64,000 nt of DNA. Source: Mobula birostris. Lineage: Eukaryota. Made by a program: the position numbers and the translations under genes. Every line of letters starts with the position of its first letter. Position 1 is the first letter of the stretch. The DNA lies in contig NC_092383.1 in NCBI RefSeq assembly GCF_030028105.1, positions 86,571,921 to 86,635,920 on the forward strand, written 5' to 3'. The notes under the pieces are model-generated. The model was given only the letters and a program-made list of their open reading frames with translations. It was not told the DNA's origin and did not search any database. Below, one piece after another: positions 13,396-62,089 of the stretch.

Positions 13396-13446
13396 CTGTG
13401 GGAAGGAATTCAACAATCAGACTCTGAATGAACATCTGAAAATCAA

Positions 13447-14960: not shown

Positions 14961-15179
14961 AACTTTCAATTACCTCCTATCAGCCCTTCAAATGTACACA
15001 AAGTTCCCAAAGGATTAATTTGGAATACTCCCAGATTTTTGTGTGTGTGTGTCTCAGATTCCAGGAAATTGGAACTGGAGGCGGAGCCTAACGGCAACTC
15101 CTTTGCTGACATTTTGGAAACATCTCTATTTCTATCTTTTGATAGCTCTTTTTTCCCTCTCAAGATTCTTCTGTAGTCC

Positions 15180-16499: not shown

Positions 16500-16760
16500 C
16501 CTTATCTGCTTCACCTCTCACCCACTTGAAACTCCACACCTTCCCCTCTCCATTCTATTTGCCGACTGTGCTTCACCCCTCCTCAATCCCCTACCACCTA
16601 GTGGACCCAGTCTCACACCTCCCCCTCTTCTATTTACACTCTATCCCTCTCCACTCACACGTGACGCAGGGTCTCGACCCAAACCGTTGACATTTCCCCT
16701 CTCCCTGAAAGAAGCTGCTTGACCCATTGAGTTCCTCCAGGAGTGAACTCTGAACTCCAG
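16500..16760 (+). mobile_element. Penelope-like terminal remnant with degenerate hammerhead motif (orthologs near 54400-54620 and 63500-63650)
   Basis: Pyrimidine-rich run, then gtgacgcagggtctcgacccaaaccgttgac and gctgcttgacccattgagttcctccag. Confidence 0.55.
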
Positions 16761-16869
16761 TTTCTGACATCTTTAGTGTCTACAGGTATTCAAATACTGT
16801 TCTGAAAATGGTGTATGACCCCCAAACCAAAACTGATGATGCAAATGTCCAGCGCAGTTTGTTACTCAC

Positions 16870-16906
16870 CGGGTAGGAAACCAATCAGAAGAACTGAAGT
16901 CCACAT
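16870..16906 (-). CDS. Gene A exon 1: signal peptide MWTSVLLIGFLP
   Basis: ATG at 16906, donor G|GTGAGT at 16870 (phase 1); joins V exon to give LPVSGALW. Paralogous leaders at 54740-54779 and 63744-63780. Confidence 0.88.
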
Positions 16907-16959
16907 CTTTTTATTCGCAGAGACCCAGCCAGGACCTATCTGTCCTCAGAGAGAAATAG

Positions 16960-34778: not shown

Positions 34779-34817
34779 TCAGCAGTTCACAGCCATGATA
34801 GGGTTAAAAATTGTTGC
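34779..34817 (-). CDS. Candidate terminal exon of gene B (ATIFNPIMAVNC-stop)
   Basis: Strong acceptor ttgttttctttttgtggcacag, phase 0; TGA ends at 34779; ATTAAA on the minus strand at 34763-34758. Alternative acceptors near 35010-35030 are not excluded. Confidence 0.35.
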   Translation of the reverse strand, partial: ATIFNPIMAVNC

Positions 34818-35082
34818 CTGTGCCACAAAAAGAAAACAATGTGAAAAGGTGCCATATAATTGAGATCTGCGGAGGTGGCATGTTGGAAATGGAATGCTCA
34901 AAAAAGTTAATGTCCTGAAGTATGGTAACATTATTTCTTCACCTTCATGAAGTTGATAATGAATGATGAGAGGTTAATTCTCCATAAATGTTAAATTTGC
35001 AGAAATTCTGAAGAAGTATGAATACTTGATCCTGTTGCGAGATTTCAACACAATCTGTGTGATCCCAAAGCCTTCACTTTAC

Positions 35083-35121
35083 CTTATAGACCACTCTGGG
35101 AGGATCTGATTCATCAGGTTT
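35083..35121 (-). CDS. Gene B cytoplasmic exon KPDESDPPRVVYK
   Basis: Acceptor gttgccttttacag, donor AAG|GTAAAG; 39 nt, phase 0-0, matching the TM exon end. Confidence 0.65.
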
Positions 35122-35375
35122 CTGTAAAAGGCAACGGTCAAATCATCAGACTCATTGACACTGGGAACTCTGCTTTAGAGTTGTATCTGGAGCTTGGACT
35201 CCAATATATTCACATCAAACATTCTGCACACATACAGTTGTCAACATCTTGTCAATATCATCTGCAGATAGCTTTGGATTGACCATTGGATAAGAAATAG
35301 TCAATGTGTTTAAATATCTTCCCTCAAATGATCAGTATATTTGAAAGCAAATTCCATTGATGTCCAGAAACCTAC

Positions 35376-35466
35376 CTTAGTTTCCCTTGTGAACCATGAG
35401 ACTGAAATAGTGCAGATCAGCAGCAGTGTGAAGAGCAGCCAACGACCAACCTTCCATATCATGAAA
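35376..35466 (-). CDS. Gene B transmembrane exon (S)FMIWKVGRWLLFTLLLICTISVSWFTRETK
   Basis: Acceptor ttctgtatctcttcccctttgctcag (phase 2), donor AAG|GTAGGT (phase 0); hydrophobic helix followed by R/K. Phase matches the stalk exon at 44428-44482. Confidence 0.85.
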
Positions 35467-35859
35467 CTGAGCAAAGGGGAAGAGATACAGAACTGATGAG
35501 ACAAAACGAGATGGCTCTGTGTTTGAAACATTTACCTCCTGTTTCCTCTGTAACCTTAGTGGAGTGGAGCTCGGTAGATAAGCACAGGCAGACGAGTTTA
35601 ATTAGAAGAGTAAACTAGTGTTGACAGAACGATGAGTAGGAGAAAGGAGAAAAACCTGATCATCATCTGGAACAAAACCACATTTTCTCGAGGCAGTGGC
35701 AACATCTTGGATTGCAGTCATTCATTGATACTATTATGATTGTTGGAATTCCTGAGTATGCCCGCTAGAAAATGAATCTCAGGGTTGTATAATAAATTTA
35801 TTTTGAGCTTTGAAATCTTTTCTGCATTACATCTAGTTCAATAACATTTTTTTTTAGCA

Positions 35860-36077
35860 GAATACCAACTTCTCCTCTCATGTGTCATCACTGATTATTA
35901 TTCTTCCATATTGTTCACTTTGCCCATTTGTATTCACTAACAATGTGCTCTGGCAGTCCTACATGAGGCACAAATACTTTGTGTGTGAACGGTATATTGG
36001 TGCATAGTGACAATCGATTGTGACCACTCTTCCCCACAACTCCTCTTATTTATCTTCTGCCCATAAACCACACAAAA
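35860..36077 (-). pseudogene. V'' pseudo-exon (paralog of V' at 2949-3264) inside gene B intron
   Basis: LWAEDK*..WSQSI..PIYRSHTKYLCLM*DC..LVNTNGQSEQYGRIIISDDT*: in-frame stops and 3' truncation. Flanking intron matches 3300-3440 and 4700-5280. Confidence 0.8.
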
Positions 36078-37169
36078 CTGAGGGAGAAATTCTTCAGAAA
36101 ATTTACAGGTAAAATTAAATTTACACAAGTAGATTCAAGATTGTTTAATGTCATTTCTTGTATACAAATGTAAAGGAGAACAAAATCATTGTTCCTCTCG
36201 ATCTGAAGCAGCACAAAAACAAAAAAAAAATAAAGAAAGCAATAATAATAATAAAAGATGTTTTACTTAAAGCCTCTTTTGCACATTGGACATTTGTCGG
36301 ACTTTGTTGTGTGTGGTTTGTCATGGATTCTATTGTGTTTCTTTGATTTGTGCATGTGTGAAAGAAGATGAATCTCTAGGTCGTTTATGGTGTATATACT
36401 TTGATAATAAGTTTACATTGAATTTTGAACTTGGAAAGTGGCTAATGGGATGACTGATGGAATTGAACTCAGGCAGTGTGAAATGATGAATTTTGGGAAA
36501 TTGAACAAGGGCAAACCTTACGCAGTAGAGAACTAGGTGTGCAACTACACAGATACCTGAAAATGGTAAGACAGATACCTGAAAGTGGCAACACAGGCAG
36601 ACAAAGTGCTGAACAAGGAATATGACCAGCTTGCCTTCATATGATGGGGCATTAATACAGTTGCGATGGCATGTTAGAGCTATAAAGGACATTGTCACCA
36701 TCTCATCTTGAATACTCTGTGTAGTTCCATAGGAAGAGTGTGATTAAATTAGAGAAGGTACAGAAAGCATTCACAAAGATGCTGCTAGGACTGGAGGGTT
36801 TGGGTTATGGACAGGCTCGGACAGTTTGAAACTTGGATGTGCAAGTTCAACTATGTTTGAAATGCTCCACATTTGAATGGAGTAAGTGACAGATTATAAC
36901 ATTGCATTAAGGTAGTACAAGGGGAAACAGTAAGAGAATGCAGAATAAAGTGTTACAGTTACAGAGAAAGTGCCATGCAGTAGACAATAAGCTGCAAGCC
37001 CAGTTAGATTATAAGATCAAACACCCATTTTATCATACTACGAGAGCATCCAATAGTTTTGTAACAGTGAGAAAGAAACTGTCCTTGAAGCTTGTGGTAC
37101 ATGCTTTCAGACTCTTGTAATTTCTGCCCAATATCAGGGGAGAGGAAGAGAGTACGTCAGTGGCTAAAA

Positions 37170-39845
37170 GATGGCTGCTATTGAGAGCTGAATGTCCAAG
37201 GATCTACTGTGTATTGGAAAGATAGGTTGATAGGCAGAAGGGGTGGTGTGGCCCTGTGTATAAGAAATAATATTAAATCATTAGAAAGGGATGACAGAGG
37301 ATTGGAAGGTGTAGGGTCTCTATGAGTTGAGTTAAGAAATGTCAAGGGTAAAAGGACCCTAATGGCAGTTGTGTACAGACCTTCAAACTGCAGCTGGGAT
37401 GCGGATTACAAACTTCAGCAGGAGATAAAAAAGGCATGTCATAAGGGCAATATCATGATAACCTTCAGGGATTTTTACATGAAAACGTCTGGGGAAAGCC
37501 AGGTCAGTACTTGACCTCAAGAGAGAGGATTTGTAGAATGTCTAAGGCATAGTTTTTTAAAACAGCTTGTTATTGAGCCCACTTGGGGATAGGTTGTGCT
37601 GGATTGGGTGTTGTGCAATGATCCGGAGGTGATAAAGAGAGCTAAAGGTTAAGGAACCCTTAGGGAACAGTGATCACAATATGATCATTCACTTTGAAAT
37701 TTGAGAAGAAGAAACTAAATTCAAATGTGTTGGTATTTCAGTGGAATAAAGGAAATTACAATGGCATGAGAGGGGAACTGGCCAAAGTTGACTGGAAAGG
37801 GACACTAGCAGGAAGGACAGCAGAGCAGCAATGATTGGAGTTTCTGCGAAAAATGAGGGAAGTGCAAGGCAGATATATTCCAAATAAGAAGAAATTTTCA
37901 AATGGAAGGATGATACTACCATGGCTGACAAGTGAAGTCAGAGCCAAAGTAAAAGCAAAAGAGAGGGCATACAAGGAAGCCAGAGCTAGTGGGAAGATAG
38001 AGAATTGGGAAGATTTGAAAGACTTACAGAAGGAAACTAAGAAGGTCATTAGGAAGGAAAAGATGAATTATGAGAATAAGCTGGTAACTAATATCAAAAA
38101 AGATACTAAAGGCTTTTTTAAGTATATAAAGGGTAAAAGGGAGTCGAGGGTAGATATAGGGCCAATAGAAAATGCCGTTGGAGATATTGTAATGATAGAC
38201 ACAGAGATGGCATATTTTGCAACAGTTTTCACAGTGGAAGACCTCTGCAGTATACCTGATATTCAAGAGTGTCAGGGAAGTGAAGTATGTGCAGTGAAAA
38301 TTATGACTGAGAAGGTGCTCAAGAAGCTTAATGGTTTGAATGTGGATAAATCTCCTGGACCTAATGGAATGTACCCTTGGGTTCTGAAGGAAGTAGCTGG
38401 AGAGATTGTGGAGGCATTAGCAGTAATCTTTCAAGAATAAATATTTCTGGCATTGTACCAGATGACTGGAAAATTGCAAATGTTATTCCGCTATTTAGGA
38501 AGGGTGGGAGGCAGCAGAAAGGAAACTGTAGGCCTGTTATCCTGACATCAGTGGTTGAGAAGTTTTTGGAATTGATTGTTAGGGATGAAATTACAGAGTA
38601 CCTGGAGGCATATTGCAAGATAGGCCAAAGCTAGCAGAGTTTCCTGAAAGGAAAATCCTGCCTGACTAACCTACTGCAATTTTTTGAAGAAATTACTAGC
38701 AGGGTAGGCAAAAGAGATGCAGTGGATGTGGTGCACTTGGATCTTCCGAAGGCCTTTGACAAGGTTCCACACATGTGGCTATTTAGCAAGTTAAGAGCCC
38801 AAGGAATTACAGGGAAGTTACTAGCATGGGTGGAGTATTGGCTGATCGGTAGAAACAGAGAGTGGTAATAAAGGGATCCTATTCTGGCTGGCTGCCAGTT
38901 ACCAGTGGAGTTGCACAGGGTTTGGTGTTGGGACTGCTGCTTTTTACAATGTACAACAATGATTTGGTCTATGGGATTAATGGATTTGTAGCTAAATTTG
39001 CTGATGATACAAAAATAGGTGGAGGAGCGGGTAGTGTTGAGGAAACAGAGAGCCTGCAAAGAGCCTTAGATAGTTTAGGGGAATGGGCAAAGAAGTGGCA
39101 AATGAAATACAATGTTGGAAAGTGTATGGTCATGCACTTTTGTGGAAGAAATAAATGGGCAGACTATTATTTAGATGGGGAGATAATTCAAATTGCAGAG
39201 ATGCAAAGGGACTTGGGAGTCCTTCTGCAGGATACTCTAAAGGTTAACCTCCAGGTTGAGTCAGTGGTGATAAAGGCGAATGCAATATTGGCATTCATTT
39301 CTAGAGGTATAGAATACAAGAGCAGGGATGTGATGTTGAGGGATTATAAGAGAATGATTCCAGGAATGAAAAAGTTACTATATGGGAAACGTTTGGCAGC
39401 TCTTGGGCTGAATTCCCTGGAGTTCAGGAAAATAAGGGGGGATCTCATAGAAACATTCTGTATGTTAAAAGGCCTGAATGGATTCGAAATGGCAAAGTTA
39501 TTTCCCATGGGAGGGGAGTCTAGGACAAGAGGGCATGACTTCAGGATTGAAGGATGTCCATTTAGAACAGAAATGCAGAGAAGTTACTTTAGTCAGAGTG
39601 TCGTAAATCTGTGGAATTTTTTGCCATGAGCAGCTGTGGAGACCAAGTCATTTTGTGTATTTAAGGCAGAGATAGATAGGTTCTTGTTTAGCTAGGGTAA
39701 TCAAGAGGTATGGGTAATGAAGGGTATGGGGAGAAGGCAGGCGAGCGGGGATGACTGGACGAATTGGATCAGCCCATGATTGAATGGCGGAGCAGACTCG
39801 GTGGGCCAAATGGCCTACTTGTGCTCCTTTATCCTATGGTCTTAT
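37170..39845 (+). mobile_element. CR1 ORF2 (APE remnant to 3' tail), degenerate
   Basis: ORFs 37835-38440, 38377-38634 and 38862-39629 (GVAQGLVLG, FADDTKIGG); tail tatggtcttat. Same subfamily as 6812-10668. Confidence 0.92.
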
Positions 39846-40559
39846 CGGTAATTGGGTCTTCAATTAGATTGGCTGCTTTACCATGTCAGTGAAGTGTATT
39901 AAAATCAATTAAAAATATAAATTATTACAAATATCCATAAAGTATAATTATGTATGTATGAATGTGTATAACAATCAGGATGTGGGGAGAAGCTGAGGTA
40001 ATATCTACAGATCCCTCTGCACTCACAATTGAAGGATCTAATAAAGGAAACACTGCCTCTGCTTAAAACCAGCTCTCCTACAAAAGTCAACTCCCTCCTA
40101 ATTCCATACTGGTTTGGACATTGATTGTTGAGTTCTCACTGGTGTCACGTCAAAATCTTTTCCCCTCTGGACTGTGGAACATCTTCAACAGACCCAGTAG
40201 AAAGCCTGCAGTGAATGTATCAGGGCAAACAGTTTGACATCACATGAGCTCCTCCAAGCACACATTGTAGATGGAGATGTCTCCTGCTGTTACATAACCA
40301 GCACATAGAGAAATAACTTGAAATGTGATGTCCTCAGCCAGTAATTGAGCAGGAACTTTGCCTTGCTGTGACTTTCGCTGCTGTGGAACCAGTGGTAAAG
40401 AAGCTTTGCAAGTTCTTGGCCAGTACAGCTCAACTTATGTCATGGGATAGAGTTAGCCGTGGAACTGTCAGAGTAAATGCTACAGGGAGCACCCTCTGAG
40501 TCATGACAAATGGAGGAACATGTTCTAATTTCCTCATCACAGACATAGCACAGCAGTGT

Positions 40560-41420
40560 GATGTAAACATGACGCTATTTCCATTCTGATGAGCTGCAGA
40601 TCAGGAAGGTTCAGGGATGCCACTTTCCTGTAAGAATGAAGTGCAAGTCTGGCAGGATTAGGAAATCCTGGCTGACAAGGGATATTGAGATTCTGGTCAG
40701 GAAAAACAAGGCATCGGCAGTGAATCCCTTGAGGAATGTAAGAGATATAGGTATACAATTAAAAGAGATCAGGAAAGCAAATAGAGTATGTGAGATAACA
40801 TAAGCAGATAAGGTAAAAGAATTCTGAGAGTCTTACACGTCTATTAAAAGGAGAAGAGCAACAAGGAAGAGATTAAGTTCCCATAATGATTAATGTGATC
40901 ATCCATATGTGGAGCTACAGGAGACTGGTGAGGTCTTAAATTAATATTTCTTGTCTGTATTTACTGTGGAGCAGGTCATGGAAGATAGGAATTAAGGGAA
41001 ATGAATAGTGTTCTATTGGAACATATCATTACAAAAGAAGAGTTGCTGGCAGTCTTGAAGAATATAATTTTCAGATAATCTCATAGGGCCTGAGCAAGTG
41101 TAGCCCAGGATATTATGAGGAGCTAGGGAGAAATTACTAAGGCCTTGGCAGAGATATCTGCATCACCCAGCCATAAGTGAGGGAACAGAAGTGTGGAGGA
41201 TTAATGGCAAATATTGTGGCTTTATGTAAAGAAGGGGTACAAAGGCACGCCAGGAAGCTGCATGTCAGTGAGACCAACATCACTGGTCGGAACCTTACAA
41301 GAGAGGATTCTGAGAAATAGAGTCGACTAGCAATTGGATAAGCAAGGACTGATGAGGAATAGTCTGCATGGGAAATCAGATCTCACCAATATGAATGAGC
41401 ATTTGAAGAGGTGACAGTGT
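40560..41420 (+). mobile_element. Old CR1 ORF2 fragment
   Basis: Degenerate pre-RT sequence (gggcctgagcaagtgtagcccagg, gtctgcatggg). Confidence 0.55.
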
Positions 41421-41639
41421 CACGATGTACGCTGGCAATGTTGGAACCCAATTGCACAGGAAATCCAGACTCCAATGTGGAGACGGAGACCAAAGTTTAT
41501 TCATAGGAATTCCAACAGAATGTCAATGGCTGAGCGGCAACTGCAAGACTGAACGCTCTCAAATTGGACCCCGCGATTAGCGCTAATCAGGCATCCGCTT
41601 AAGTAATACAAGTAATATGGAATTCCTGAGCCTATCAAA

Positions 41640-43700
41640 ATGATGGAACGCACACCATGATGGACTGTTTATTGTCACCAGATATTTTAACCACGTGAAC
41701 CTTAAGTCAGTGCTCCCCAGATTCCATCAGAACATGGACTTTGCAACGAGAGGGGAGAATGTGTTGGACCTTGTTTACACAAACATTCCCGACCCCACCT
41801 CAGCTACTCAGACCACGTCTCTGTTATGCTAATCCCAGCGTACAGACAGCACATCAGGCGCGCCAGACCTGTTCAGAAGCAGGTGAAAACCTGGCCAGCA
41901 GGAGCCATCTCTGCTCTTCAAGAATGCTTTGAGCACACTGACTGGCACATGTTCAGGGAGGCTGCAACTGACGGCGACTCTACCAGCTTAGAGGAGTACA
42001 CGGCATCAGTGACTCAGCAAGTGCGTCAATGACGTCACTGTGGCCAAGACCATCACTACACGCGCTAACCAGAAGCCATGGATGACCACAGAGGTGCGTG
42101 CGCTGCTGAGGACCTGTGACTCCACCTTCAGAGCAGGCGACAGGGCAGCCCTAACAACAGCAAGGGCCAAACTGTCCCGGGCCATCAAAAAAGCAAAGCG
42201 TGCACACGCCCAGCGAATCCACAGCCACTTCCAGGATAGGGGCGGCACATGGCACCTGTGGAAAGGCATTCAGAACATCACCAACTACAAGACAACACCA
42301 CCTGCCCGTGCTGGTGATGCCTCCCTCCCAGATGCGTTGAATAACTTCTATGCTCGTTTTGAGGTGAAAAATGACATGGCAGTGAGGAAGACCACTCCTC
42401 CTCCGAACAACCAGGTGCTGTGTCTTACCTTGGCTGATGTGAGGAGAACCCTGTGCAGGGTCAACCCATGGAAGGCTGCTGGACCAGACAATATTCCTGG
42501 CAAAGTGCTTAGAGTATGTGAAGACCAGCTAGCTGAGATTCTCACTGACATCTTCAACATCTCCGAGCAGCACCGTCGTTCCTACGTGCTTCAAGGCCGC
42601 CACCATCGTCCCCGTGCCGAAGAAGTCTTCAGTGTCCTGCCTCAACAACTACCATCCCGTCACACTCACAACCATCATCATGAAGTGTTTCGAGAGGCTC
42701 GTCATGGAGCACATCAAGACCCTGCTGCCCCCCTCACTGGACCCCCTGCAGTTCACGTACCGTCCCAACCGTTCAACAGACGATCCCATTGCCATCACCC
42801 TCCACCTGGACAAAAAAGACACTTACGTTCGAATGCTGTTCATAGACTTCAGTTCAGCATTCAACACAATCATTCCTCAGAAACTGATTGGAAAGCTGAG
42901 CCTACTGGGCCTGAACACCTCCCTCTGCAACTGGATCCTAGACTTCCTGACTGGGAGATCTCAGTCCGGATTGGAAGCAGCACCTCCAACACCATCACAC
43001 TGAGCACGGGGGCCCCCCAGGGCTGTGTGCTCAGTCCACTGCTGTTCACTCTGCTGACCCACAACTGTGCTGCAACACACAACTCGAACCAAATCACCAA
43101 ATTTGCCAATGACACGGCCGTGGTGGGTCTCATCAGCGAGAATTATGAGTCAGCTTACAGAGAGGAGGTGCAGCGGCTAACAGACTGGTGCAGAGCCAAC
43201 AACCTGTCCCTGAATGTGAACAAAACAAAAGAGTTTGTTGTTGACTTCAGGCTTCAGGAGGACACGGAGCGACCACTCTCTGCTGAACATGAATGACTCC
43301 TCCGTAGAGATCGGTAACAGCACCAAATTTCTTAGTGTTCACATGGCGGTGAATCTCACCTGGTCCCTCAACACCAGCTCCAGAGCAAAGAAAGCCCAGC
43401 AGCGTCTCTACTTTCTGCGAAGGATGAGAAAAGTCCATCTCTCACCTCCCGTCCTCACCACAGTCTACAGAGGTTGTATTGAGAACATCCTGAACAGCTG
43501 CATCACTGCCTGGTTCGGAAATTGCACCATCTTGGATCGCAAGACCCTTCAGCGGATAGTGAGGTCAGCTGGGTAGATCATCGGGATCTCTCTTCCCACC
43601 ATTACCGACATTTACACATCACGCTGCATCCGTAAAGCAAACAGCATTATGAAGGACTCCATGCACCCTTCATACAAACTCTTCTCCCTCCTGCCATCGA
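41640..43700 (+). mobile_element. Rex1/Babar-type LINE, frameshifted
   Basis: [73 protein letters not shown]. Confidence 0.9.
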
Positions 43701-44427
43701 GCTGCCATAGCAATCCATAGAAATGGATACATTAACAAAGGTTAAGAGACATTTTGACAGATGTGTGGATAGGAAAGGCTTAGAACAGGGCTTCACAAAC
43801 TTTTTTATGCCATGGACCTTAATTCATCAACTTCAGTTTGTTTATTTATGTGTAATTAATCTGTAGATTTCATTCTCACTTTCATAAACTATTATGCATT
43901 ATGTATACTGCAGTGCTTTGCATCTTGGTTTGGAGAAACATTGCCTCACTGGACGGTATACATGTATATAGTTAAATGACAATAAACTTGACTGGACTGG
44001 ACTGGACTTGATCCCAGGTTGGGAGCCCCTGGCAGAGAAGGATATGGAATAAATAAAATTAAATGTGCTGAACTTAGATGAACATCCTGGTTGGCTTGGA
44101 CGAGTCAGGCTGAAGGGCCTGTTGTTCTAATATATATCAAAGACATTATGATTCTATACATGAGCTTCAACTGCTATGCTTAAATTTTTAAATAATTGGG
44201 GAAGAGAAATTTTTCTTTGATCTCAGGCTTGACGCATGTTCAAGAAAATCAGGAATGCTCAGTTTCCAAGATATGAGTTTGTTGAAGTTAATCATGTCAA
44301 ATATGATAAACACTAGTTGAAGAGAAACAGATTTCTCTCCCAACTGGCTCTACTTGGAAGCAGTAGCAGTGAAACCACCCGCAGCGAAAACCTTATACTT
44401 TACATCTGGGCTGGAGTAGTTTCTTAC

Positions 44428-44482
44428 CTTTGTGCGGTTGTCATCAATTCTGTCACAGTATTTTCACAGAAATCAATTCTCC
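44428..44482 (-). CDS. Gene B stalk mini-exon (G)RIDFCENTVTELMTTAQ
   Basis: Acceptor tttattttcttttaacag, donor AAG|GTAAGA; 55 nt, phase 1 in and phase 2 out, bridging C2b and TM exactly. Confidence 0.8.
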
Positions 44483-44744
44483 CTGTTAAAAGAAAATAAA
44501 ATAAAATTTCAGCTGCTTTGTACTTGCAAGAACAAGAGAGCACAGTTATTAGACCAATAGGTACTTGAACATGGTGGACCAAAGGTGATCTATTACCTGA
44601 TGCACATTTAAAGATTAAAGATGAGCTTTATTTGTCGCATGTACATCTGATCATACAGTGAAATGTATCGTTTACAACAGTTACCAACAGAGTTTGTGCT
44701 GGGGGCAGCCTGCAAGGGTTCCATGCTTCTCGCACCAAAATGGC

Positions 44745-44905
44745 TTCCATAGGACTTACTCATCCTAACCTGTGCATTTCTGGAACGTGGGAGGAAACTG
44801 CGGCCCCAGAGGAAATCCTCGCAGTCACTGGGAGAACATACAAACAACTTGCAAACAGTGGTGGCAATTGGACCCTGATCGCCGATCGCTGGTGCTGTAA
44901 TAGTG
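44745..44905 (-). mobile_element. V-SINE copy
   Basis: Reverse complement of the core seen at 1644-1930. Confidence 0.6.
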
Positions 44906-45179
44906 TTACAGTTAATTGCTGTGCTCCTGTGCAGCCAATTACATTTACTGGCAGTTTGGATACAGGGAGATAATCCAACAGGATAATGCAGGAGGTTTTC
45001 TCAATGAAAAAGCAAGGTCTTTTGTTTCTCACATCTCTTGATGTCTCTACCTCTGAGAAAAATAACTCAATCTTTCTTGAATACTGGTTCACCACATTCT
45101 GGGAGAAGAAATCTTTCCTAATCCCAGTCTTAAATGTCTCACCCTTCAGATAATTTCTAAGATTCCAAGCTTACTTACT

Positions 45180-45600
45180 TACTGTCCGTTACACCACTGG
45201 TGTTTAGGGCAGCAATGAAGGTGTCCTATCTCTGGCAGTGTTCGGGGCTTCCTTCATTGTGTCAGTAGGTTCCTCTCGGTTTTCACTGCTGTCAGTCATG
45301 CAAGTCCCAGGTAGAGACTGAGCAATACCGTCAAACTCTGATGGAGAGGAATTTTTCATTTCTGTTTCCATGACAATTTTGTTGAACCAATCAGGCTTGT
45401 CAGTCCTGAGTGAACCCCCCGAACCTGGAGGATTGGGGGACCACTCTAAGTCTGGCCCCTACCCTCTGACCTGTTCGGCATGGGTGACCCGATGAACTGC
45501 CAAAGCATAAAGCCCTCACTCCAGCCAACGTAGCTCTCTGCGTCATTGAGGCATGCAAACCTCCAAATCTAACGACAAATTTGTGGTTCTCTTGGAGGTA
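45180..45600 (+). mobile_element. RTE-like LINE 5' region fragment
   Basis: aaccccccgaacctggaggattgggg..gacctgttcggcatgggtgaccc resembles RTE 5' UTRs (recognised from recall). Confidence 0.4.
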
Positions 45601-46199
45601 AGTCTCATTAGACTATCCTGTATTCCCTGGCATTTGAAGCATCCTACCTGCATCTGTATCACCCTGCTAAAATATTGCTCATTTCTATGTGATCACCTCT
45701 CAGCCTACTGAACTCCATCAAATAAAAACCAATTACATTTGCTCTCTGATCTTGTGTCACTTGTGGCATTCCAGAAATCAGTCTGCTGATCCTTTGCTTG
45801 CCTTCTTCCTTAACAAGAACATCTTTCATTGAACCAAATCTGCTGACAATGCTGGTGGCCCAAGACTGAGGCTCGAGTCAATGTCTGATCGATTTAAGCT
45901 TCAGGCCAGAAAGGAAAGATCGGGTATGGGCCAAATCGAGGCGGTGAGTCCTGCGTACAAGAGCGTGTCAAAGCAGCAAGAACCCCTACCATCCAAGCTA
46001 TGCTGTCTTCTTGCTGCTGTCAGTACGAAGGAGTTGCAGGGGGCTTAGATCCCATATTACCAGGTTCAGGACCAATTATTATCTGCAACCTGTAGGCTCC
46101 TGAAACATCATGGATAAATTCACTCACCAACACTGAACTGATTCTGCAACCGATGGACTCACTTTCAAGGATTCTACAGTTCATCTTCTCAGTATTTAT

Positions 46200-46570
46200 T
46201 TGTTTATCTCCTTCACCTTTCCCCTTTCCCTCTCTCACCATTCTCCTAACCTGCCCATGACCTCCCCCTGGCGAGCCTCCACTTTCCCTGCTTTCCATGG
46301 CCTTCTGTCCCCTATCAGATTTCCCCTCCTCCAGCCCTTTATCGCTTTCACCAATTGACTTTCCAGCTCTTTACTTCAACCCTCCCACTCTCTCAATTTC
46401 ACCTTGTACTTCTCCATCTCCTCCCACCGACTTTCTTACGTTGACTTCTAATCTCCTTTCCTTTCCAGTCCTGATGAAGGGTCTCAGCCCGAAACGATGA
46501 CTGATGACTCTTTTCAATAGGTGTTCCCTGGCCTTCTGAGTACCTCCAGCAATTTGTGTGTAGTGCTTTG
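46200..46570 (+). mobile_element. Penelope-like terminal repeat containing a minimal type I hammerhead motif (46466-46503)
   Basis: CAGTC-CTGATGA-A-GGGTCTCAGCCC-GAAA-CG-AT-GACTG; helix I CAGTC/GACTG; cleavage triplet mutated. Confidence 0.65.
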
Positions 46571-47083
46571 CTTTCCAGCATCTGCAGGTATTCTCTTGTT
46601 AATTATTTATCTATTATTTGTTTCTTTTGTATTTGCACAATTTGTCTTATTTTGCACATTGATTGTTTGACATTTTTGATTGTGTGTAGTTTTACATTGA
46701 GTCTGTTGTATTCATTTGTATCTACTGTGAATGCCTGCAAGAAAATGGATCTCGGGGTAGTATATGGTGACAAAAACTTAATTTTCTTTCAACTTTGAAG
46801 TGATTTATCTTGGAAGGACTATCTTAATGAATGGCCAGAAATATTACCAGATGAGATACATTCACACCCAGCCAGCGAGAGTCAGATCAGAGACAGGAGA
46901 CCCTGTGCTGAGAGACTCACATTTAAACGGCTGTGCCGAAAAGCTTCTCATTCTCTGAAACGTGGTGACAACATACACTTAATGCTCCTGTGTGAAGTTC
47001 CAACAACACAATATCCAGCACACATCAGTCATTCAGTTGTACTCCATTGACCATCATAAAGAATCAAACCCTCCAGCACTTAC

Positions 47084-47404
47084 CCATGCTGTTGACTTCA
47101 ATCACATTTCTGCAGCTGCTGACACTGTTGGACATGGACACACTGACCACTTCACTGGACTTCTCTCCATTAATATTTGAGGCTTTGCAATAATACAGAT
47201 AATTTTTGTATTTTATGGATTGGCAATGTAGATCAAGTTTGTTTGTGTCAGAGATCTTTGAATCCTCAGATGGCGTCTTTTCATACCATGAGTACTGAAT
47301 GGGAAGGGATCCATGGACAGACTCACAGGACACTGACACGGAGTCCCCACAATTTGAGCCATTTGTTTGTGGTGAAAATCGAAGCAAAGGAAGAGACACA
47401 GGTT
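47084..47404 (-). CDS. Gene B exon: C2-type Ig domain C2b
   Basis: Acceptor ctgttccacag|AA at 47404, donor G|GTAAGT at 47084; 321 nt open. EPVSLPLLRF..NCGDSVSVSC..YSWY..LHC..YYC..SCRNVIEVNSM. Confidence 0.88.
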
Positions 47405-47994
47405 CTGTGGAACAGAATTAGTGAACATCTGAAAATCAAACACAAAGATTTCAGCAGTTCTGTATCTCAACCAGGAGCCACCAGTTTGGAATCTCAGCAG
47501 CTCATCTACTCCACTGTGTCTCGTCATCCTCACAGCTGCCAGAACGTACATGTCTGTCAGTACCTCCAAAAACAGCAGGACTCCTGATCAGATCAACAGT
47601 GGTGACACAGAGTATGTGTCAGTATGAAATTCAGGGCTTCAGTCTCTCTCAGCAGTGGGGAAACAGTCTAAAGTGAGACCAAACAGTTTGACTCTGGAAT
47701 AGCAGCATTTGTGGATGTTCTGGAAAACTCTCCATAGGTTGAAAGCAGGAAATTGTCAGATACATACAAAATGAATGGTGACTTCATTTTGTGAAGTCAG
47801 AAAGAGATGAGTTATACAGCTCTCGTTACATGCACGTGCAGTTCAACTCTTTGAGTGATAATGCATTATGCAGAAAGTTTAAAGTTAATAACTCATCTCC
47901 TTCTACTTTAGGCCACGAACGTATCAATCACCTCTGATGTGGACCACTTTCTGGAAGTCCAAAATGCCGGCTTCTACAAAGAATGGATCTGTAT

Positions 47995-49035
47995 GCTCCA
48001 TGACTCTTTAGATGCTGGATTAGTTCCTGAGGATTGGAGGGTGGCATGTAACCCCACTTTTTAAAAAAGGAGTGAGAGAGAAACTGGGGAATTATAGAAT
48101 GGTAAGCCTGACATCGGTGGTGGGGAAAATGCTAGAGTCAGTTATCAAAGGTGTGATAACAGCACACTTGGAAAGCGGTGAAATCATCGGACAGAGTCAG
48201 CATGGATTTGTGAAAGGAAAATCATGTCTGACGAATCTCAGAATTTTTTGAGGATGTAACTAGTAGAGTGGGTAGAGGATAACCAGTGGATGTGGTATAT
48301 TTGGATTTTCAAAAGGCTTTTGACAAGGTCCCTCACAGGAGATTAGTGTGCAAACTTAAAGCATACGGTATTGGTGGTATGCTATTGATGTGGATAGAAA
48401 ATTGGTTGGCAGACAGGAAGCAAAGAGTGGGAATAAATGGGACCTTTTCAGAATGGCAAGCAGTGACTAGTGGGGTACCGCAAGACTCAGTGCTGGGACC
48501 CCAGTTGTTTACAATATATATAAATGACTTAGACAAGGGAATTAAATGCAGCATCTCCAAGTTTGCGGATGACACGAGGCTGGGCGGCAGTGTTAGCTGT
48601 GAGGAGCATGCTAAGAGGATGCAGGGTGACTTGGATAGGTTAGAAGCGGGCAATTCAGAAGTTTTCCAGATGTTCCTCTGTACTCTCATGTCCGTCTCAA
48701 TCAAATCAGAATTGTGCACGGTCCCCTACTTAACAGATAACAGACATCACCATCGAAGTGGTTGTGCGTGCTGCTGTCGCGCCGCCATCTTATCCTTCTC
48801 ATTAGTAAAGGCTTCATCTCCCTCTGGCTGAAGAAGTTCCTCCTCATGTCTCTTTTAAAGGGACATCTTTCCATTCTGAGTCTGTGCTTTCTGGTCCTAG
48901 ATGCCCACACTGTAGGGAACCTCTCTTCACATCCACTGGGGTTTGCAATGCTCGATAGCTTTCAATAAAATCCACCCTCATTCTTCTAAACTCCAGCACG
49001 CACAGGCCCAGAGCCTTCAAATGATGTTCATACAT
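47995..49035. mobile_element. Mosaic of CR1 fragments (+ 47995-48640; - 48810-49035) with a short unclassified insert
   Basis: YLDFQKAFDKVPH..GVPQDSVLGP..FADD on +; CR1 C-terminal motifs on -. Occupies the position where gene A has V'. Confidence 0.8.
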
Positions 49036-50639
49036 TCAGGGAGTTTAACATCACCTGGACTGTGGTAGTGGAGTGTTGGTTTTCTGACAACATCAGACTT
49101 TATCGCCAGCAATGTGCCATCAGGATCGTTGCTGTTATTTGTTAACCACTCTTATTGTCATCAATATTAATAATCTGGAATGAAACTGTAGGTGGCATGA
49201 TTAATAAGTTATGGGTGAGACAGCAGTGTGGTGGACAGTGGCAAGAGTTGTGTAAGTTTACACGAGGATCTTGAAAATGAGCCGGTGTTCAGCCCCATTA
49301 TTCTGTGCCAGCAAGCTGCCCCCTCCCCACCTGAGCCTGTATTGTCTGTTTGCATTTGACCTGTCTCCCTCTCTTCTCGGTCCTACTATCAGGTGGAAGG
49401 TGCAGGAGCCTTGGGGCCCACACCACAGGGTTCCTCAACAGTTGTTGTCCTGCAGCTATCAGGCTCCTGGATTGGTTTCACTCGCCTCAGCACTGAACTG
49501 ACTCCGCAGCTGTGGACTCACTTTCAGAGACTCTGCCTCTCATGTTCTATGTATTATTTGTTTACATAGTTTTATTATTTGCACGATTCATCATCGCTTG
49601 CACATTGATTTTTTGTCAGTCTTTGTTGTGTGTGGTTTTACATGGATTCTATTGTGTTACTTTGTTTTGTGGGCAAAGGTATGGTGGATAATCACAGTCT
49701 TTATCCCAGGGTGGGGGAGTTGAAAACTAGAGACCCTCGGCTTAAGGAGTGAGGGAAAATTCTTAGAGAGCCCGGAGCAGCCGTGTTTTACACACACAGC
49801 CGTGTGTGCATGGAAAAGGCTGTCAGAGGAAGTACTAGAGATGGTTACAAATACACTATTTAAAATACATTTGGACAAGTTCATATATAGGCAAGTTTTA
49901 GAAGGATACGAGACAAATGCAGTGAAATGGGAGAAGCTCAGGAAGACACTGTGGTCAGCACAGATGATTTGGGGTGAAACTCCTGCGTCCATAACCTATA
50001 ACTCCTTGACTCTGCAGCATCCTCTCTAAACTGGAACATGCTTTTAAAAGGATAAATTCAGAATTCTATTTCATTGCATAGATGTGACAGCTCATGGGAT
50101 CACAGCCTATCAGATTGCACTTCAATCTCAACAATCAAAGTTCAAAGTATACTTATTATCAAAGAATCTATACTATATACAACCTTGAGATTCACCTCCT
50201 TCCAGGCAATCACAAAAAAATAGAACATCCCAATATACAGAAAAAAGAGCAAATCAAAGTAAGCAAATAACATTTGGAGCTGAAATTCACAAAACTGAGG
50301 CCACAGCCAAGAAGCCAGTCATCACTGTAGTCAATTCATGAGGCCATTAATTGCCAACCACAGCCTCAGTTTAGCGTAAAGACACGTAAACCTTCTGTGC
50401 AGCAAGCTGAACAGCAGCCCATCCCTCGCCTTGGACTGACATTCCTTTAGTGATTAAAAGGGAATTGAAGGTTTATTATCCTTGTTGTAATCATGAAATG
50501 CAGCAGCCTTGTTCATAGAAGGAATGGATTTCCTTCTCATGTCTCAAAGCGAGTGAGGTTTTTTATTTAACATACAAAAACCCAATTTCAGCGGTTAGTA
50601 ATTTACCTGGGATGCTCAGATATTCAAAAGCTAGAGACG

Positions 50640-51560
50640 ACCAAAGACAATGAGACCATTAGACATAGGAGGAGAATTAGACCATTTGGCCTATACAGTC
50701 TGCTCCACTATTCCATCAAGGCTGACTTATTATCCCACTCAATTCCATCCTTGGCATTTCTCCCCATAATCTTTTGATGCCTTTCCTAAACAAGAAACTA
50801 TTAAGTACGCTTTAAATATACTCAATGTCTTGGCCTCAAAAGCCATGTATGGTATTGAATTCCACAGATTCAACACCCTCTGGCTACAGAAATTCCTCCT
50901 CATCTCTGTTCTAATGTACGGAGTCTGCACATCCTCCATGTGGAATGTATGGGGTCTCCCCGAGTGGTCCTGTTTCCTCCCACAGTCCAAAGACATACTC
51001 ATTAGGATAACTGCTCTTTGCAGATTGCCCTGTGATTATGTTACAGTTAATTGGGTTTGTCGAGAGTTCGATCGGTGTTGTGACCCAAAGGGCTGGAAGG
51101 GCCTATTCTGTACTCTATCGGTAAATAAATAAAATAAAGGGATGCCCTTGCATTCTGAGGCTGATTTTTCAGGATGATTTCCCCATAAGGAAACCACTTT
51201 TGATCATATACCTCCAAGTACCCCAAAATCCTGTTCTTAATAATAGACTCCCACATCTTCACAACCACTAAAGTCAGGCTAACTGGTTGACAATTTCCTT
51301 CCTTTCGCCTCCCTCCTTTCTTAAAGAGTGTGGTGATACTTCCAATTTTCCAATCCTTTGAACATTCCAGTCTAATTATTCTTGAAAGATCACCACTAAT
51401 GCCTTCATGATTTCTTTAAATAACTCTTTCAGAAACTTGGGATGTAGTACATCTGGTCCAAATGACTCATCTACTTTCAGATCCCTCAGCTTCTCAAGCA
51501 CGTTTTGCTTAGTAATAGCAACAACACTCATCTCTGCCCCTGCCATTGCCAAATTTCTGT
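50640..51560 (-). mobile_element. CR1 fragments with a V-SINE piece
   Basis: RTEMRRNFCSQRVLNLWNS; DLKVDESFGPDVLHPKFLKE. Confidence 0.7.
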
Positions 51561-51908
51561 CATTCCCACTAATATTTGCAATATTATAAGTCCTTCCTTT
51601 TGCTTTTATGAGAATCAGAAGTCGATACCAGTCTGGACTTTTCAATGTAAAGCCAGAAGTATTAATGGAATGCTCTCAATTTGTCGAGATGCGCAAGTCC
51701 AACTATGTTTGAGATGCTCCATATCTTCCAGGAGCAAGTGACAGACTTAACTGTTCACTGCACTTTAGTTCTACCCCATGGATGCTGCAATGTGCAGCTT
51801 CTACAAATGCAAAGAAATTCCTTACCCTCACTAGAGGTATAAGAGCAGCAGTAACAGAGTAATAAAAAGAAATATTTAAATGTATCCTCCCTTGAAATTA
51901 GAACTTAC

Positions 51909-52229
51909 CGCTGCCATTGATTTCTGTCACGTAACTGCAGATATCTCTGTTGTTGAAGACTGTCGCAGTAACCATTGCACTGGATCTCGCTCCAAGCCGA
52001 TTTGAGGCACTGCAGTAATATTGCTGGTGTGTGTGCTTGAAGGATTGACAATGCAGAGTCAGTTCATTGGTATCTGAGATCTTCGGATACCCAGATGAGG
52101 TTTGTTCATACCATCTGTATTGAATGGGATGGGATCCCTGGAAGGACTCACAGGAAAGTGACACTGAGCCCCCAAGACGTGAGACATTTGCTGGTGACAG
52201 ATATCGAATCACAGGAACAGACACGAGTT
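51909..52229 (-). CDS. Gene B exon: C2-type Ig domain C2a
   Basis: Acceptor ctttcccacag|AA at 52229, donor G|GTAAGT at 51909; 321 nt open. ELVSVPVIRY..SVSLSC..IQYRWY..LTLHC..YYC..ICSYVTEINGS. Confidence 0.88.
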
Positions 52230-52279
52230 CTGTGGGAAAGAATTAAACATTCAGACACTGAATGAACATCTGAAAATCA

Positions 52280-52830
52280 GACACTCTTCTGTCACTTTAT
52301 TATGTACAAATATTAACCTGATCATTAATACAAATATCTAATCAGTCAATCAGACGATCAGCAACTCAACTCATCAAAGCATGCAGAAATATTCAAGAGT
52401 TTCAGTCAATGTTAGGCCAAAGTCAGAATGCGGAAGTATTGTGATCTAAGTGCCTTTGAGCATGCAATTATTGCTGGTGCCAGACGGGGTAGTAAATATC
52501 TAAGGCACTACTATCCTCCTGGGATTTTCACACACAACTGTCTCTAGAGTTTAGTGAGAATGGTACGAACAACATGAAAAAACATCCAGAGAGCAGCAAT
52601 TCTGTGAACAAAAGTGCTTTATTAATGAAAGAGGTCAGAGGAGAATGGCCAGACATGTTCATGCTGACAGAAAGGTGACGGGAATTCAAATAACCGTGGG
52701 TTATGACAGCGGTGTGCTGAAGAGCATCTGAAGGTACAACACGTCAAACCTCGAAGTGGATGAGCCACAGAAGCAAGAGACCATGAACATCCACTCAGTG
52801 GCCACTCTGTTATGTTCAGGAGGTTTAAAG
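52280..52830 (+). mobile_element. Tc1 remnant orthologous to 13447-14000
   Basis: ctgtcactttattatgtac.., gtgatctaagtgcctttgagcatgcaattattgctggtgcc, cactcagtggccact. Confidence 0.75.
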
Positions 52831-53033
52831 GCAGCAACTTGTGAGATATCTGTCACATGTTTGGAGGCTTTCAGGAGAGAATGAAATTGTAACTGGGTTC
52901 AGTGACCTGCCGTATAGAGGGAAACATTTGGTACTGATATTACTGCAGAGATAGTGAGGGATGGACAGTGTCTGGCAAAGATCATGAGACTTTTATTTTA
53001 TGGAATGCACAAATCAATCACTGAGAAACCTAC

Positions 53034-53354
53034 CATCATTTACTGTTAGTTCTAAATTAAATCTTGTATCGAGACCTGGTGTTGTAATTCCACAGCTGTA
53101 CCATCCTGAATCTCCAGAGTGAAGATCCTCCATAGTAACAGTAAATATTCTCCGTTCCGGGTTATCTGTGATTGACACTCGTCCACTCCGTCTGTGCTGC
53201 CCATTTGTTTCCACTAAAACTGAACAATGGACGGTCCATCCATGGCACCAATACTTTGTGTCTGAGCGGTACTTTTCTTCATAGTGACAATCGATTGTGA
53301 TCGCTCTTCCCACAACTCCTCTTACAGATTTCTCTGCCCACAATGCACCTGAAA
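53034..53354 (-). CDS. Gene B exon: CD300/pIgR-like V-set Ig domain
   Basis: Acceptor ctccctcag|TT, donor G|GTAGGT; 321 nt open. ITIDC..KYWCHGWTVHC..GRVSITDN..DSGWYSC. Confidence 0.92.
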
Positions 53355-53780
53355 CTGAGGGAGGCATTGTCAGATGTGAGGGAAAGGAACAATTTAATAC
53401 AACAATTATTTTTCAACATGACGGTAAAAACAGGTGCAGGTCATGTACGGCATGTGGTCCATGACAACACAGCCAATGATTTTGGTGTGAAGTGCAGTCA
53501 GTGCTGTTACTGTGTCAGCCGTGTCAGTGATCTCTCTCCCCTGTGTCAGTACATTGTGGGTTCACTTCCCACTCCAGAATCCTGAGCAGAAACCCAGGGC
53601 TGATCTTCCAGTGCACTGCTGGGGGAGAGCCGTAGTGTAGCCAGAGGGTGTTGACTCTATGGAATTCAATACCATACACAGCTTTTGAGGCCATGAAAGT
53701 GTTCAACTTTCAGTTGCTTCAGAATATGTCAGCCTTTGAAATGTCCACAGAGCTTCCAGCTATTTCATAAGATGCTCCCA

Positions 53781-53784
<4 letters not shown>

Positions 53785-53844
<60 letters not shown>
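53785..53844 (+). repeat. (TG)30 microsatellite in gene B intron 1
   Basis: Direct read; the paralogous site at 15040-15051 has only about (TG)6. Confidence 0.97.
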
Positions 53845-53847
<3 letters not shown>

Positions 53848-54739
53848 CTGTGTGTGTTCAGACAAGGTTCTGAAGCAATTTGTAAATATTGTACCTATCA
53901 AGTATTTCTATGTGTAGTTAGAAGGTGGTGCAACAGTGGTCATTAGTGCTTCTGTGTCTAGAAACTCAGGTGAGATTTCAATAACTGTTGAGATACTTTG
54001 AGTACGAAAATCCAATTTATTATTTCTGGAATTTAAAAAACAAGTATCAGTAATAATAATGATGAACTGTCAGATTGTAAAGATCCCATCTAGATTGGAA
54101 AGACTTTTAGGGAGAGAAATTTCTTATCCCTACCACCCTGGTTTACCTTTGACTCCAGATCTAGTAACGTTCTATGCTAACTGCACCACTGAAGTGGCCC
54201 AGGAAGTCTCTGATTTCAAGACAATAATGTCAAATGTCACAGTGATCCCTGCAGAGAGAGAACAGATCCCAGCAATGGTAGATCTGATGTTCTCGCTTAA
54301 CAGGTTGCAGTAGATTTCTCCAGCTGGACATATTCTCCCCACACCTGGCTCTACACAATTCCTCTTTTCTCCTTATCTGCTTCCACCTCTCACCCACCTC
54401 CAAACACCATCCCTTTTCCACCCCATTCCATTTGCCTGTTGTGCTTCACTATTCCTCAGCCCCGACTAACGTGAGGACCCAGCTTCACGCCTCCCCCTCT
54501 CCTATTTAACCCTCTCCCGCTCTACTCACACATGAGGCAGGGTCTCAACCCGAACCATTGACATTTCCTCTGCCCCTGACAGAAGCTGTTTGACCCATTG
54601 AGTTTCTCCAGGAGTGAACTCTGAACTCCAGTTTCCGACAGCTTTAGTGTCTACGGGTATCAAGCATTCTTGTGGAAACGTTGTACGACCCCCAATCCAA
54701 CACTGATTATGCAGTTGTCCAGTGCTGTCTGTAACTCAC

Positions 54740-54779
54740 CAGGTAGGAAACCAGTCAGAAGGATCAACGTCCACAGCAT
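54740..54779 (-). CDS. Gene B exon 1: signal peptide MLWTLILLTGFLP
   Basis: ATG at 54779, donor G|GTGAGT at 54740, phase 1. Confidence 0.88.
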
Positions 54780-60900: not shown

Positions 60901-62089
60901 ATTCATGTTCTCAAATATTATTTAGAACTTATTTACCTATTACTATGATTATTATTTTGTTTTTCTTTTAGTATTTCCATTTTTTTTACTCATTGGTTAT
61001 TTGTCTTTGTGTGTAGTTTCCACTGATTCTATTGTGTTTCTTTGTATTTACGGTGAATGCCTGAAAGTAAATGAAATAGTATATGGTGACATATACAGTA
61101 TGTCCTTCAATAATAAATTGAAGTTTCTTTTCTGACAATTATGCAATCATTTGATCAGAATAAAATAAAAGTTAATTGAAATTGGGTATATTTCCAGTCA
61201 ATATTCAGGGGTATTAAAGACGAATGAACAATGGAATTAAAAGTTGGGTGTTGAACAAAATGAGTGATTGCCTTGTTGCAGCTTGCAATGGTCAACGGGG
61301 TGTGAATCTGCAAATAGAAGTTGCTACTTTTCTCAGAGTTGACATGTAACTGTAACCCGTCGATGTACAATTCGCCTCGGAGCTGCTACATGAAGGGAGC
61401 TGTTTGCAGATGTAAAGATCATCACTCATGATAACAAAACGCAAAATATTAGAAGATTCTTTGTAATCAGATAACGATGTGGTATAGCACAAGTTTTTTT
61501 CACACAGTGGATGAGAAAGAGAATAAGTAAGGCAAAAGGCCAGCATTACATTGAAAACTGCAGCAGGTCACTCTTATGCAGCGAGTTTCAACCTGGAATA
61601 AAACTGCAACCTACACACCAATTTTGAGCTTATTATAGTTGTATATCTTTCACCTTTGATTGAGATGATGTCAGTTTCTTTGATTAATATGACAGAGGAT
61701 TCACATATTAAGGTATCAAGTTTCAGTAACTGACAGACTATAGTTTCAAGATCAGGCACCTGAATCAGCATGGATAACTTCACTCACTCAACACTGAACT
61801 GATCATGACACAGAAACCTAAGGGCTCACTTTCAAGGACTCCATAACTCGTGTTCTCAGTATTTATTTATTTGGAGATTCAGCACAGAACAGGCTCTTTA
61901 GGCCCAATGAGCCACACTGCCCAGTAACCCACCGATTTAACCCAGCCTAATCCCAGCACAGTCTTCACTAATTCATTTGACACAAGAAGATGGATTTCAC
62001 TGTATGCTTCGAAGTTTTGATGTAAATTTGATGAATATAAAGCTAATTTTTAAAAATAAAACAGAATATACATGCAATATTTCCTTCCC

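Follow-up and report, generated by a model that had tools for sequence, protein, structure and literature searches.

Does a gene that sets a V domain of the pIgR/CD300 type before C2 domains of the Fc receptor-like type represent a new receptor family or one already described, and is it intact? The question is raised by positions 86,571,921 to 86,635,920 of contig NC_092383.1 from Mobula birostris (NCBI RefSeq assembly GCF_030028105.1), a 64,000-nucleotide stretch that we call the window and whose own numbering is used below. Its minus strand carries a seven-exon gene for a membrane receptor with three immunoglobulin (Ig) domains. We propose that this gene belongs to a tandem cluster of modular domain immune-type receptor (MDIR) genes in a mobulid-type ray, and we assign identity, structure and family, taken jointly, a probability of about 0.72.

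A seven-exon receptor gene in LINE-rich DNA

Joined at AG acceptors and GT donors, seven minus-strand exons give a single open frame with phases 1, 1, 1, 1, 2 and 0.

54779-54740, minus strand: leader exon 1, 40 nt, phase 1; holds the ATG, encodes the signal peptide MLWTLILLTGFLP and ends at the donor G|GTGAGT
53348-53034, minus strand (alternative start 53354): V exon 2, 315 nt with the 53348 acceptor; carries YWC-x6-C
52229-51909, minus strand: C2a exon 3, 321 nt
47404-47084, minus strand: C2b exon 4, 321 nt
44482-44428, minus strand: stalk exon 5, 55 nt, GRIDFCENTVTELMTTAQ; donor AAG|GTAAGA, phase 1 to 2
35466-35376, minus strand: transmembrane exon 6, 91 nt, FMIWKVGRW-LLFTLLLICTISVSWF-TRETK with a family-conserved Arg
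35121-35074, minus strand: tail exon 7, 48 nt including the stop; 15-residue cytoplasmic tail KPDESDPPRVVYKVK

A preliminary description of the window, made from its letters alone, had proposed seven exons with these phases and GT-AG sites, and we reproduced them, recovering its 396 codons when the V exon begins at 53348. The long interspersed elements (LINEs) that it had placed around the 3' exons were likewise detected, as reverse-transcriptase (RVT_1) open reading frames in introns 3 and 5.

We correct two boundaries. The V exon begins at a tandem acceptor, CTCAG|TTTCAG|GTG, in which 53354 lies six bases upstream of 53348; the two choices differ by Val-Ser (VS) at the boundary between signal peptide and V domain. 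Both forms are present among annotated relatives (FLPVSGALW and FLPGALR). The 53354 acceptor is used by nearly all relatives (FLPVSGALWAEK) and by the annotated orthologue described below, XP_072134926.1, to whose N terminus the leader residues are identical. By this comparison 53354 is the more likely start, and the product then has 398 amino acids.

At the other end, the last coding base is 35074, and 34779 is merely the edge of the 20-kb frame used in the preliminary description. A candidate AG-bounded tail at 34817-34779 was dropped, as homologous C termini put the tail at 35121-35074. The product, a type I membrane protein, has an intact signal peptide, three Ig domains, a stalk, a transmembrane segment and a short tail. 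It carries three N-glycosylation sequons and 14 cysteines in the ectodomain, and the stalk has one Cys. The gene is real, and it is probably functional.

Membership in the MDIR family

A C2 profile run over 1.84 billion proteins gave 1,633 matches, topped by alternating-module (V-C2)n proteins of rays and sharks. One of these, P0007, served as the second query; it is a 421-amino-acid V-C2-C2 protein of Mobula hypostoma, listed by RefSeq as "Fc receptor-like protein 5 isoform X3." It returned 119 proteins, every one of them from cartilaginous fish, among them the named clearnose-skate proteins MDIR3 (ABC86797; 2e-223), MDIR5 (ABC86800; 3e-197) and MDIR2 (ABC86796; 1e-89). This skate comparison took in MDIR2, MDIR3 and MDIR5. 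Against the skate MDIR domains, the V domain of our gene is 62 to 70% identical and its C2 domains are 52 to 58% identical.

The traits of the family recur at the locus. Its four domain types (V1, V2, C2a and C2b) behave as modules that reappear in the window and in relatives, in layouts that range from V-C2 to 11 domains. Three units lie in tandem in the window, in keeping with a large multigene family of ITIM-bearing, charged-transmembrane and motif-less forms (ITIM, immunoreceptor tyrosine-based inhibitory motif), and the collected relatives include forms with the Arg-type transmembrane segment and forms with ITIM-like motifs. The whole ectodomain resembles those of the named skate MDIRs. 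In skate MDIR5, MDIR3 and MDIR2, as here, V and C2 types alternate as modules within a multigene family, and forms with and without ITIMs share ectodomains. MDIR5 has the same transmembrane type (SWKVGRWLLF..., with WKVGRW in common) and the same tail motif (KRDESEP). The skate MDIRs retrieved differ in layout, being V-C2, V-C2-V-C2 and V-V-C2-V-C2, whereas our gene is V-C2-C2 with an inhibitory-derived stalk.

The clearnose-skate family was reportedly described in 2006 (Cannon et al., Immunogenetics 58:362), in an abstract said to give ectodomains of one to six Ig domains drawn from a few subfamilies. Citing text in PMC3031540 backs this account in part.

Other receptor families fit less well. 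Two of the three domains are C2 domains (Ig_3, FcRL5 type) and the tail has only 15 residues, whereas pIgR has V-type domains only and a long sorting tail. The V type fits CD300/CMRF35-like proteins, with which the gene shares the V domain with a C-C' disulfide, yet two C2 domains follow the V here; CD300 is a single V on a mucin-like stalk, without C2 domains. With respect to FcRL, our gene opens with a pIgR-type V-set domain, and its tail has a single Tyr, in VVYKVK, and no other tyrosine motif, whereas FcRL ectodomains consist of FcR-type C2 domains only, and FcRL5 has no V domain and has a long tail with ITIM and ITAM-like motifs (ITAM, immunoreceptor tyrosine-based activation motif). The gene is thus an ordinary member of the MDIR family, and its mosaic layout is the MDIR signature, known since 2006.

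Two domain types in one chain

The V exon encodes a V-set domain (Pfam, 9.5e-14). Its matches in the PDB are headed by pIgR (2.7e-49, over four domains), followed by CD300/CMRF35 V domains (about 1e-19) and then by NKp44, FCMR, TIM and TREM2. It retains all 27 positions that are conserved at 90% or more among 198 family V domains. A length-windowed search with the V domain alone returned one 169-amino-acid skate protein and was little informative.

The pattern EPVSxP..C..YxWY..YYC is found in the C2a and C2b exons alike, which are 51% identical to each other. C2a matches Pfam Ig_3 at 5e-9, and C2b matches it at 4.5e-5, a score under the Pfam cut-off. A profile of the four C2 copies in the window matched human FcRL5 (PDB 9loc) at 2.2e-55, and C2a alone did so at 1.3e-34, aligning with six FcRL5 domains (4 to 9) at about 30% identity per domain. 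The motif common to both is VSxPV...G..V.L.CE...GS.PI.Y.FY.E...YYC.A.N..G. Beyond cartilaginous fish, the nearest C2 relatives are mammalian FcRL5 and "CD22-like/sialoadhesin-like" proteins of ray-finned fish.

Rays, skates, sharks and a chimaera supplied 38 family C2 domains, in which five residues (C26, W39, C60, C72 and C97) are invariant. C26, W39 and C72 are canonical C2 residues, while C60 and C97 form a second, family-specific cysteine pair; FcRL5, whose C2 domains are homologous, is without it. In an AlphaFold2 model of C2a (predicted local distance difference test score, 89.6), residues 96 to 103 form an extra strand after strand G, which the C60-C97 pair may pin in place. A Foldseek search of this model against the PDB gave only generic Ig/FN3 matches, none with E <1e-3; the best named matches, CD22 domains 6 and 7 (template-modelling score, 0.63) and FcgammaRI (0.48), added nothing beyond the sequence evidence.

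These results agree with the preliminary description on several points: the pIgR/CD300-type V domain with its extra C-C' disulfide (YWC-x6-C) is borne out by motif and PDB matches, and the FcR/FCRL-like nature of the C2 domains by the FcRL5 scores. The same description went on to see in the V+C2 mosaic a possible, poorly described family bridging the CD300/pIgR lineage and that of FcR/FCRL, and this view did not hold. The mosaic is real, and the best solved-structure matches of V and C2 do lie in different mammalian families. However, this combination is what defines MDIRs, the named skate MDIR2, MDIR3 and MDIR5 are matched directly, and identical layouts are already in RefSeq for several species. 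The family is not new: both domain types belong to a single characterized family that shares this layout, the outcome that the preliminary description had named as refuting its view. That the gene represents a hybrid family not described before is therefore highly improbable, and we retain the assignment to the MDIRs.

An annotated orthologue and a lost V2 exon

The model is identical to Mobula birostris XP_072134926.1 at 390 of 398 positions (98%), with a single gap of 107 amino acids. RefSeq lists that protein, with XP_072134927.1, as "polymeric immunoglobulin receptor-like isoform X1," of 505 amino acids and V-C2-V-C2 layout. Its leader, V1, C2a, C2b, stalk, transmembrane segment, tail and every junction, including TTAQ|SFMIW, are as in our gene, and C2b differs by one residue. 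The sole architectural difference is a 107-amino-acid V2 domain between C2a and C2b, which is absent here. By this alignment, our gene is the orthologue of that annotated gene.

In the window, the relevant elements are the following.

48286-48831, plus strand: LINE reverse-transcriptase fragment in intron 3 (RVT_1, 3.5e-15), where the orthologue and the paralogous unit B carry V2
42040-43296, plus strand: LINE reverse-transcriptase open reading frame (RVT_1) in the 9-kb intron 5
38862-39629, plus strand: a second such frame (RVT_1) in intron 5; the pair score 1.1e-8 and 1.5e-9
36069-35860, minus strand: V2 pseudo-exon in intron 5, with no AG acceptor and two in-frame stops

No V2 remnant was found between C2a and C2b. 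Self-alignment showed that, in intron 3, a segment of 1.36 kb with the LINE fragment stands here in place of 3.2 kb in unit B, which holds V2 there. The orthologous gene spans 21.6 kb, which fits the span of about 19.7 kb here plus the V2 segment. Since V2 is present in the orthologue and in unit B and absent from intron 3, the V-C2-C2 layout derives from a V-C2-V-C2 gene that has recently and cleanly lost a single phase-1 Ig exon. Such a loss leaves the frame intact because Ig exons in the MDIR family are phase 1-1.

The V2 copy in intron 5 is homologous to unit B positions 3072 to 3461 and is truncated after about 68 codons by an A-rich insertion. It is not spliceable, because its acceptor is lost, it holds two in-frame stops and it is truncated. 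We considered whether it might break the gene model and ruled this out, as it has neither acceptor nor donor.

V-C2-C2 proteins with a transmembrane segment are also modelled by RefSeq in Mobula hypostoma (XP_062921369.1), Mobula birostris (XP_072134924.1), Rhinoraja longicauda (XP_078277142.1) and Hemiscyllium ocellatum (XP_060701342.1), under the names "Fc receptor-like protein 5" or "Fc receptor-like protein 2." These four share with our gene the V, the two C2 domains, a stalk, an Arg-type transmembrane segment and a short tail, at 50 to 69% full-length identity. They are other paralogues, mostly with a GREYSC-type stalk, and their layout is not obviously the result of recent exon loss. These species, which include rays, a skate and a shark, have V-C2-C2 layouts independently of the one described here.

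The 3' exons proposed in the preliminary description proved to be genuine family exons. The stalk, the transmembrane segment (FMIWKVGRWLLFTLLLICTISVSWF) and the tail are all found again in RefSeq proteins from Mobula, Hemitrygon and Hypanus; the transmembrane exon is identical in three Mobula birostris proteins, and the tail is identical in Mobula birostris proteins and near-identical in Hemitrygon. In two further Mobula birostris models (XP_072134929.1 to XP_072134931.1; P0226, P0202), stalk, transmembrane segment and tail are identical to those of our gene, while C2b is only 77 to 81% identical and an extra RGSQPGIKSSPVQS segment stands ahead of the transmembrane segment. Either these 3' exons are common to neighbouring units or the units have near-identical duplicated 3' ends.

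Transcription and splicing

We looked for the exons in contigs assembled from sequencing runs of organism A (X1, X2 and X3) and organism B (X5), in a contig layout that spanned at most 6 kb of the gene. The join from C2b to the stalk, 47084 to 44482, which had been predicted from the letters alone, occurs in contigs of all four runs, from two studies. The intron ends CT..AC on the plus strand, that is, GT..AG for the gene, and depths at the joint resemble those of the flanking exon contigs. Exon contigs of organism A match the window without mismatch, and C2b is exact in X1, X2 and X3. In X1, depth drops from 29.6 to 0.82 below about 44407, just past the stalk exon. This gene is transcribed, and its C2b-to-stalk intron is spliced. 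Paralogous transcripts with GPIH-type stalks were also seen in the runs.

Two stretches of intron 4 (45156-45583 and 46119-46867) reach a summed contig depth of up to about 22,000 in all four runs. They show many short internal "joints" and loose ends, and have the look of interspersed repeats that are abundant and expressed, not of exons of this gene.

The stalk exon and its donor

Past its donor, the stalk exon continues into a recognizable remnant.

44427-44358, minus strand: decayed continuation of the stalk exon, an inhibitory-type transmembrane remnant with in-frame stops

Read through beyond 44428, the sequence encodes QR*ETTPAQM*SIRFSLRVVSLLLL. In a tblastn comparison with the C termini of Hypanus and Hemitrygon proteins, this read-through is collinear with their continuation from stalk to ITIM-type transmembrane segment (RKETTSPQTHTYTIVLSVVGILLI). 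The stalk exon therefore derives from an inhibitory exon that encoded stalk plus transmembrane segment.

The codon after AGG is TAA, and this first stop overlaps the GT of the near-consensus donor AAG|GTAAGA. Use of that donor excises the stop and keeps the frame. An older, weaker second donor, GAT|GTAAAG, lies 24 nt downstream at 44404|44403; read against the donor consensus, AAG|GTAAGA is the closer of the two. Judged by RKE or REE in relatives, stop and donor alike would have arisen from a single substitution (AAA or GAA to TAA). In Hemitrygon and in another Mobula birostris gene, this exon is spliced out of just ahead of the old transmembrane segment (RKETTSPQT|SMIW and REESSSYKI|YMIW). 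The internal donor would thus skip the decayed inhibitory segment and join the Arg-type transmembrane exon downstream.

A broader account would hold that the stalk exon records an inhibitory receptor gene turning non-inhibitory through an internal donor and an Arg-type transmembrane exon 9 kb downstream, and that MDIRs are the pIgR- and FcRL-like molecules which reviews call lacking. We regard this account as possible but doubtful.

Predicted function

The transmembrane type of this gene occurs at 47 places in the ray, skate and shark proteins that we collected, skate MDIR5 included. At every one of the 47 the Arg is conserved, whereas the Lys next to it varies. In our gene the Arg lies near the outer end of the helix, and 17 hydrophobic residues separate it from the cytoplasmic TRETK. 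Its position resembles that of the Arg in the FcR-gamma-coupled receptors GPVI, Fc-alpha-RI and LILRA. The tail carries a conserved [KR]x[DN]ES[DEN]P motif, and no ITIM or ITAM was found in its 15 residues. Among the collected relatives, 61 have two or more ITIM-like motifs, and relatives with near-identical ectodomain modules carry two to four.

From these features, the protein is probably the non-inhibitory half of a paired cluster whose other MDIR members bear ITIMs, and would act on leukocytes. Its V domain would bind a putative ligand, and a transmembrane adaptor recruited by the Arg would carry the signal, as in mammalian FcR-gamma-coupled receptors. We put adaptor coupling through the Arg at about even odds.

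The domain types also invite the idea of an Ig receptor that would stand in for pIgR or an Fc receptor, with IgM, IgW or IgNAR bound through the V or C2 domains. Homology to pIgR D1-type and FcRL5 domains holds at the level of single domains, bamboo-shark B cells strongly express genes automatically named fcrl5, and the literature calls classical FcR, FcRL and pIgR missing in cartilaginous fish and asks by what means opsonic uptake and Ig transport are achieved. However, Ig binding is a prediction from sequence, the 15-residue tail does not have the long sorting region of pIgR, and a large, fast-diverging paired cluster is unlike a single conserved Ig transporter. It is also established that CD300, TREM and NKp44, which share the V type, bind lipids or other non-Ig ligands. 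Binding of Ig or lipid, raised as a possibility in the preliminary description, is speculative. We consider an Ig receptor quite improbable and favour a non-inhibitory MDIR in a paired cluster.

Intact gene or decaying copy

Several observations weigh against an intact MDIR gene that signals through an adaptor. None of the runs is recorded as RNA, though their contigs hold spliced forms. Junctions other than C2b to stalk, 51909 to 47404 and 44428 to 35466 among them, are inferred by orthology. A contig of organism B continues past 44428 to at least 44410, and so a related species or a paralogue has a longer stalk form; were the 44404 donor used, the TAA stop would enter the mRNA. Sequence words from the transmembrane exon and its flanks gave a share of 0.24 to 0.29 in the RNA-like runs of organism A, which equals the exon-only fraction. 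This result is not specific to the locus, because the same words occur in DNA runs of other species; those in the RNA-like runs may therefore stem from paralogues. The ratio of nonsynonymous to synonymous substitution rates (dN/dS) against the paralogue in unit B is 0.95 for V and 0.80 for C2a, compatible with either diversifying selection or relaxed constraint, and the comparison is uninformative because unit B is itself broken. As to signalling, skate MDIR5, with the same transmembrane type, is said in the 2006 abstract to have no recognized signalling motifs. The FcR-gamma chain, the presumed adaptor, is reported absent from sharks (Akula et al. 2014), and we found no usable account of ITAM adaptors in sharks in the literature.

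Much of this would also suit a decaying or non-functional copy, whose transcripts would be targets of nonsense-mediated decay or would yield a truncated secreted V-C2-C2 fragment ending ...TTAQR. Such a copy would account for the lost Ig exon, the LINE surroundings, the TAA in frame right after the stalk with a second usable donor 24 nt downstream, the organism B contig that passes through the first donor, a stalk-to-transmembrane join that is predicted by orthology, and dN/dS values of 0.8 to 0.95. A clearly broken neighbour, unit B, which is frameshifted and has lost an acceptor, points the same way. Yet all seven exons are open and have consensus splice sites, every conserved V and C2 position is retained, and the stalk exon is spliced at a depth on par with that of the neighbouring exon. 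The 98%-identical orthologue is modelled with the same short stalk junction, and, read against the consensus, the donor AAG|GTAAGA is far stronger than GAT|GTAAAG. We therefore judge decay unlikely and return to a probably functional MDIR gene.

Other units and features in the window

The rest of the window holds further parts of the cluster.

449-16924, minus strand: paralogous unit B, with leader, V1, C2a, V2 and C2b; its 3' end (stalk, transmembrane segment and tail) lies beyond the window start
63798-63746, minus strand: third leader-like exon, MWILILLISFLP, upstream of the gene
62251-62141, minus strand: short, divergent V-domain fragment, upstream of the gene

The leader of unit B is at 16924-16864. 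A 5-nt deletion near 13150 shifts the frame of its C2a exon, and its V2 exon has lost the AG acceptor (CCCTCATGCTTTATGG); unit B is probably a degenerate pseudogene. The third leader and the V fragment look like a remnant of another unit of the cluster.

A EKETQHENFWSLYKGFKEE*AMEIKVGC-like peptide is encoded twice in the window, at 24744-24827 (minus strand) and 61189-61251 (plus strand), and matches an alternative C-terminal exon of Mobula hypostoma XP_062921369.1. Because the sequence is repeated on both strands of the window, that "exon" is probably derived from a transposable element.

Implications for the MDIR family

A seven-exon receptor spread over 20 kb of LINE-rich DNA was rebuilt almost perfectly from the letters alone. 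Up to 2026, reviews still describe cartilaginous fish as having neither pIgR nor FcRL molecules. Despite such statements, MDIRs unite pIgR/CD300-type and FcRL5-type domains in one chain, and the automatic names in RefSeq follow from this. The point is of some value to specialists independently of this locus, and the picture of the family is unchanged by it.

What the locus adds is a recent case of change in domain number through the clean loss of a phase-1 Ig exon, and a stalk exon that keeps the remains of an inhibitory transmembrane segment. If the splicing past this remnant were general, capture of 3' exons through internal donors would be a route to paired receptors in MDIR clusters.

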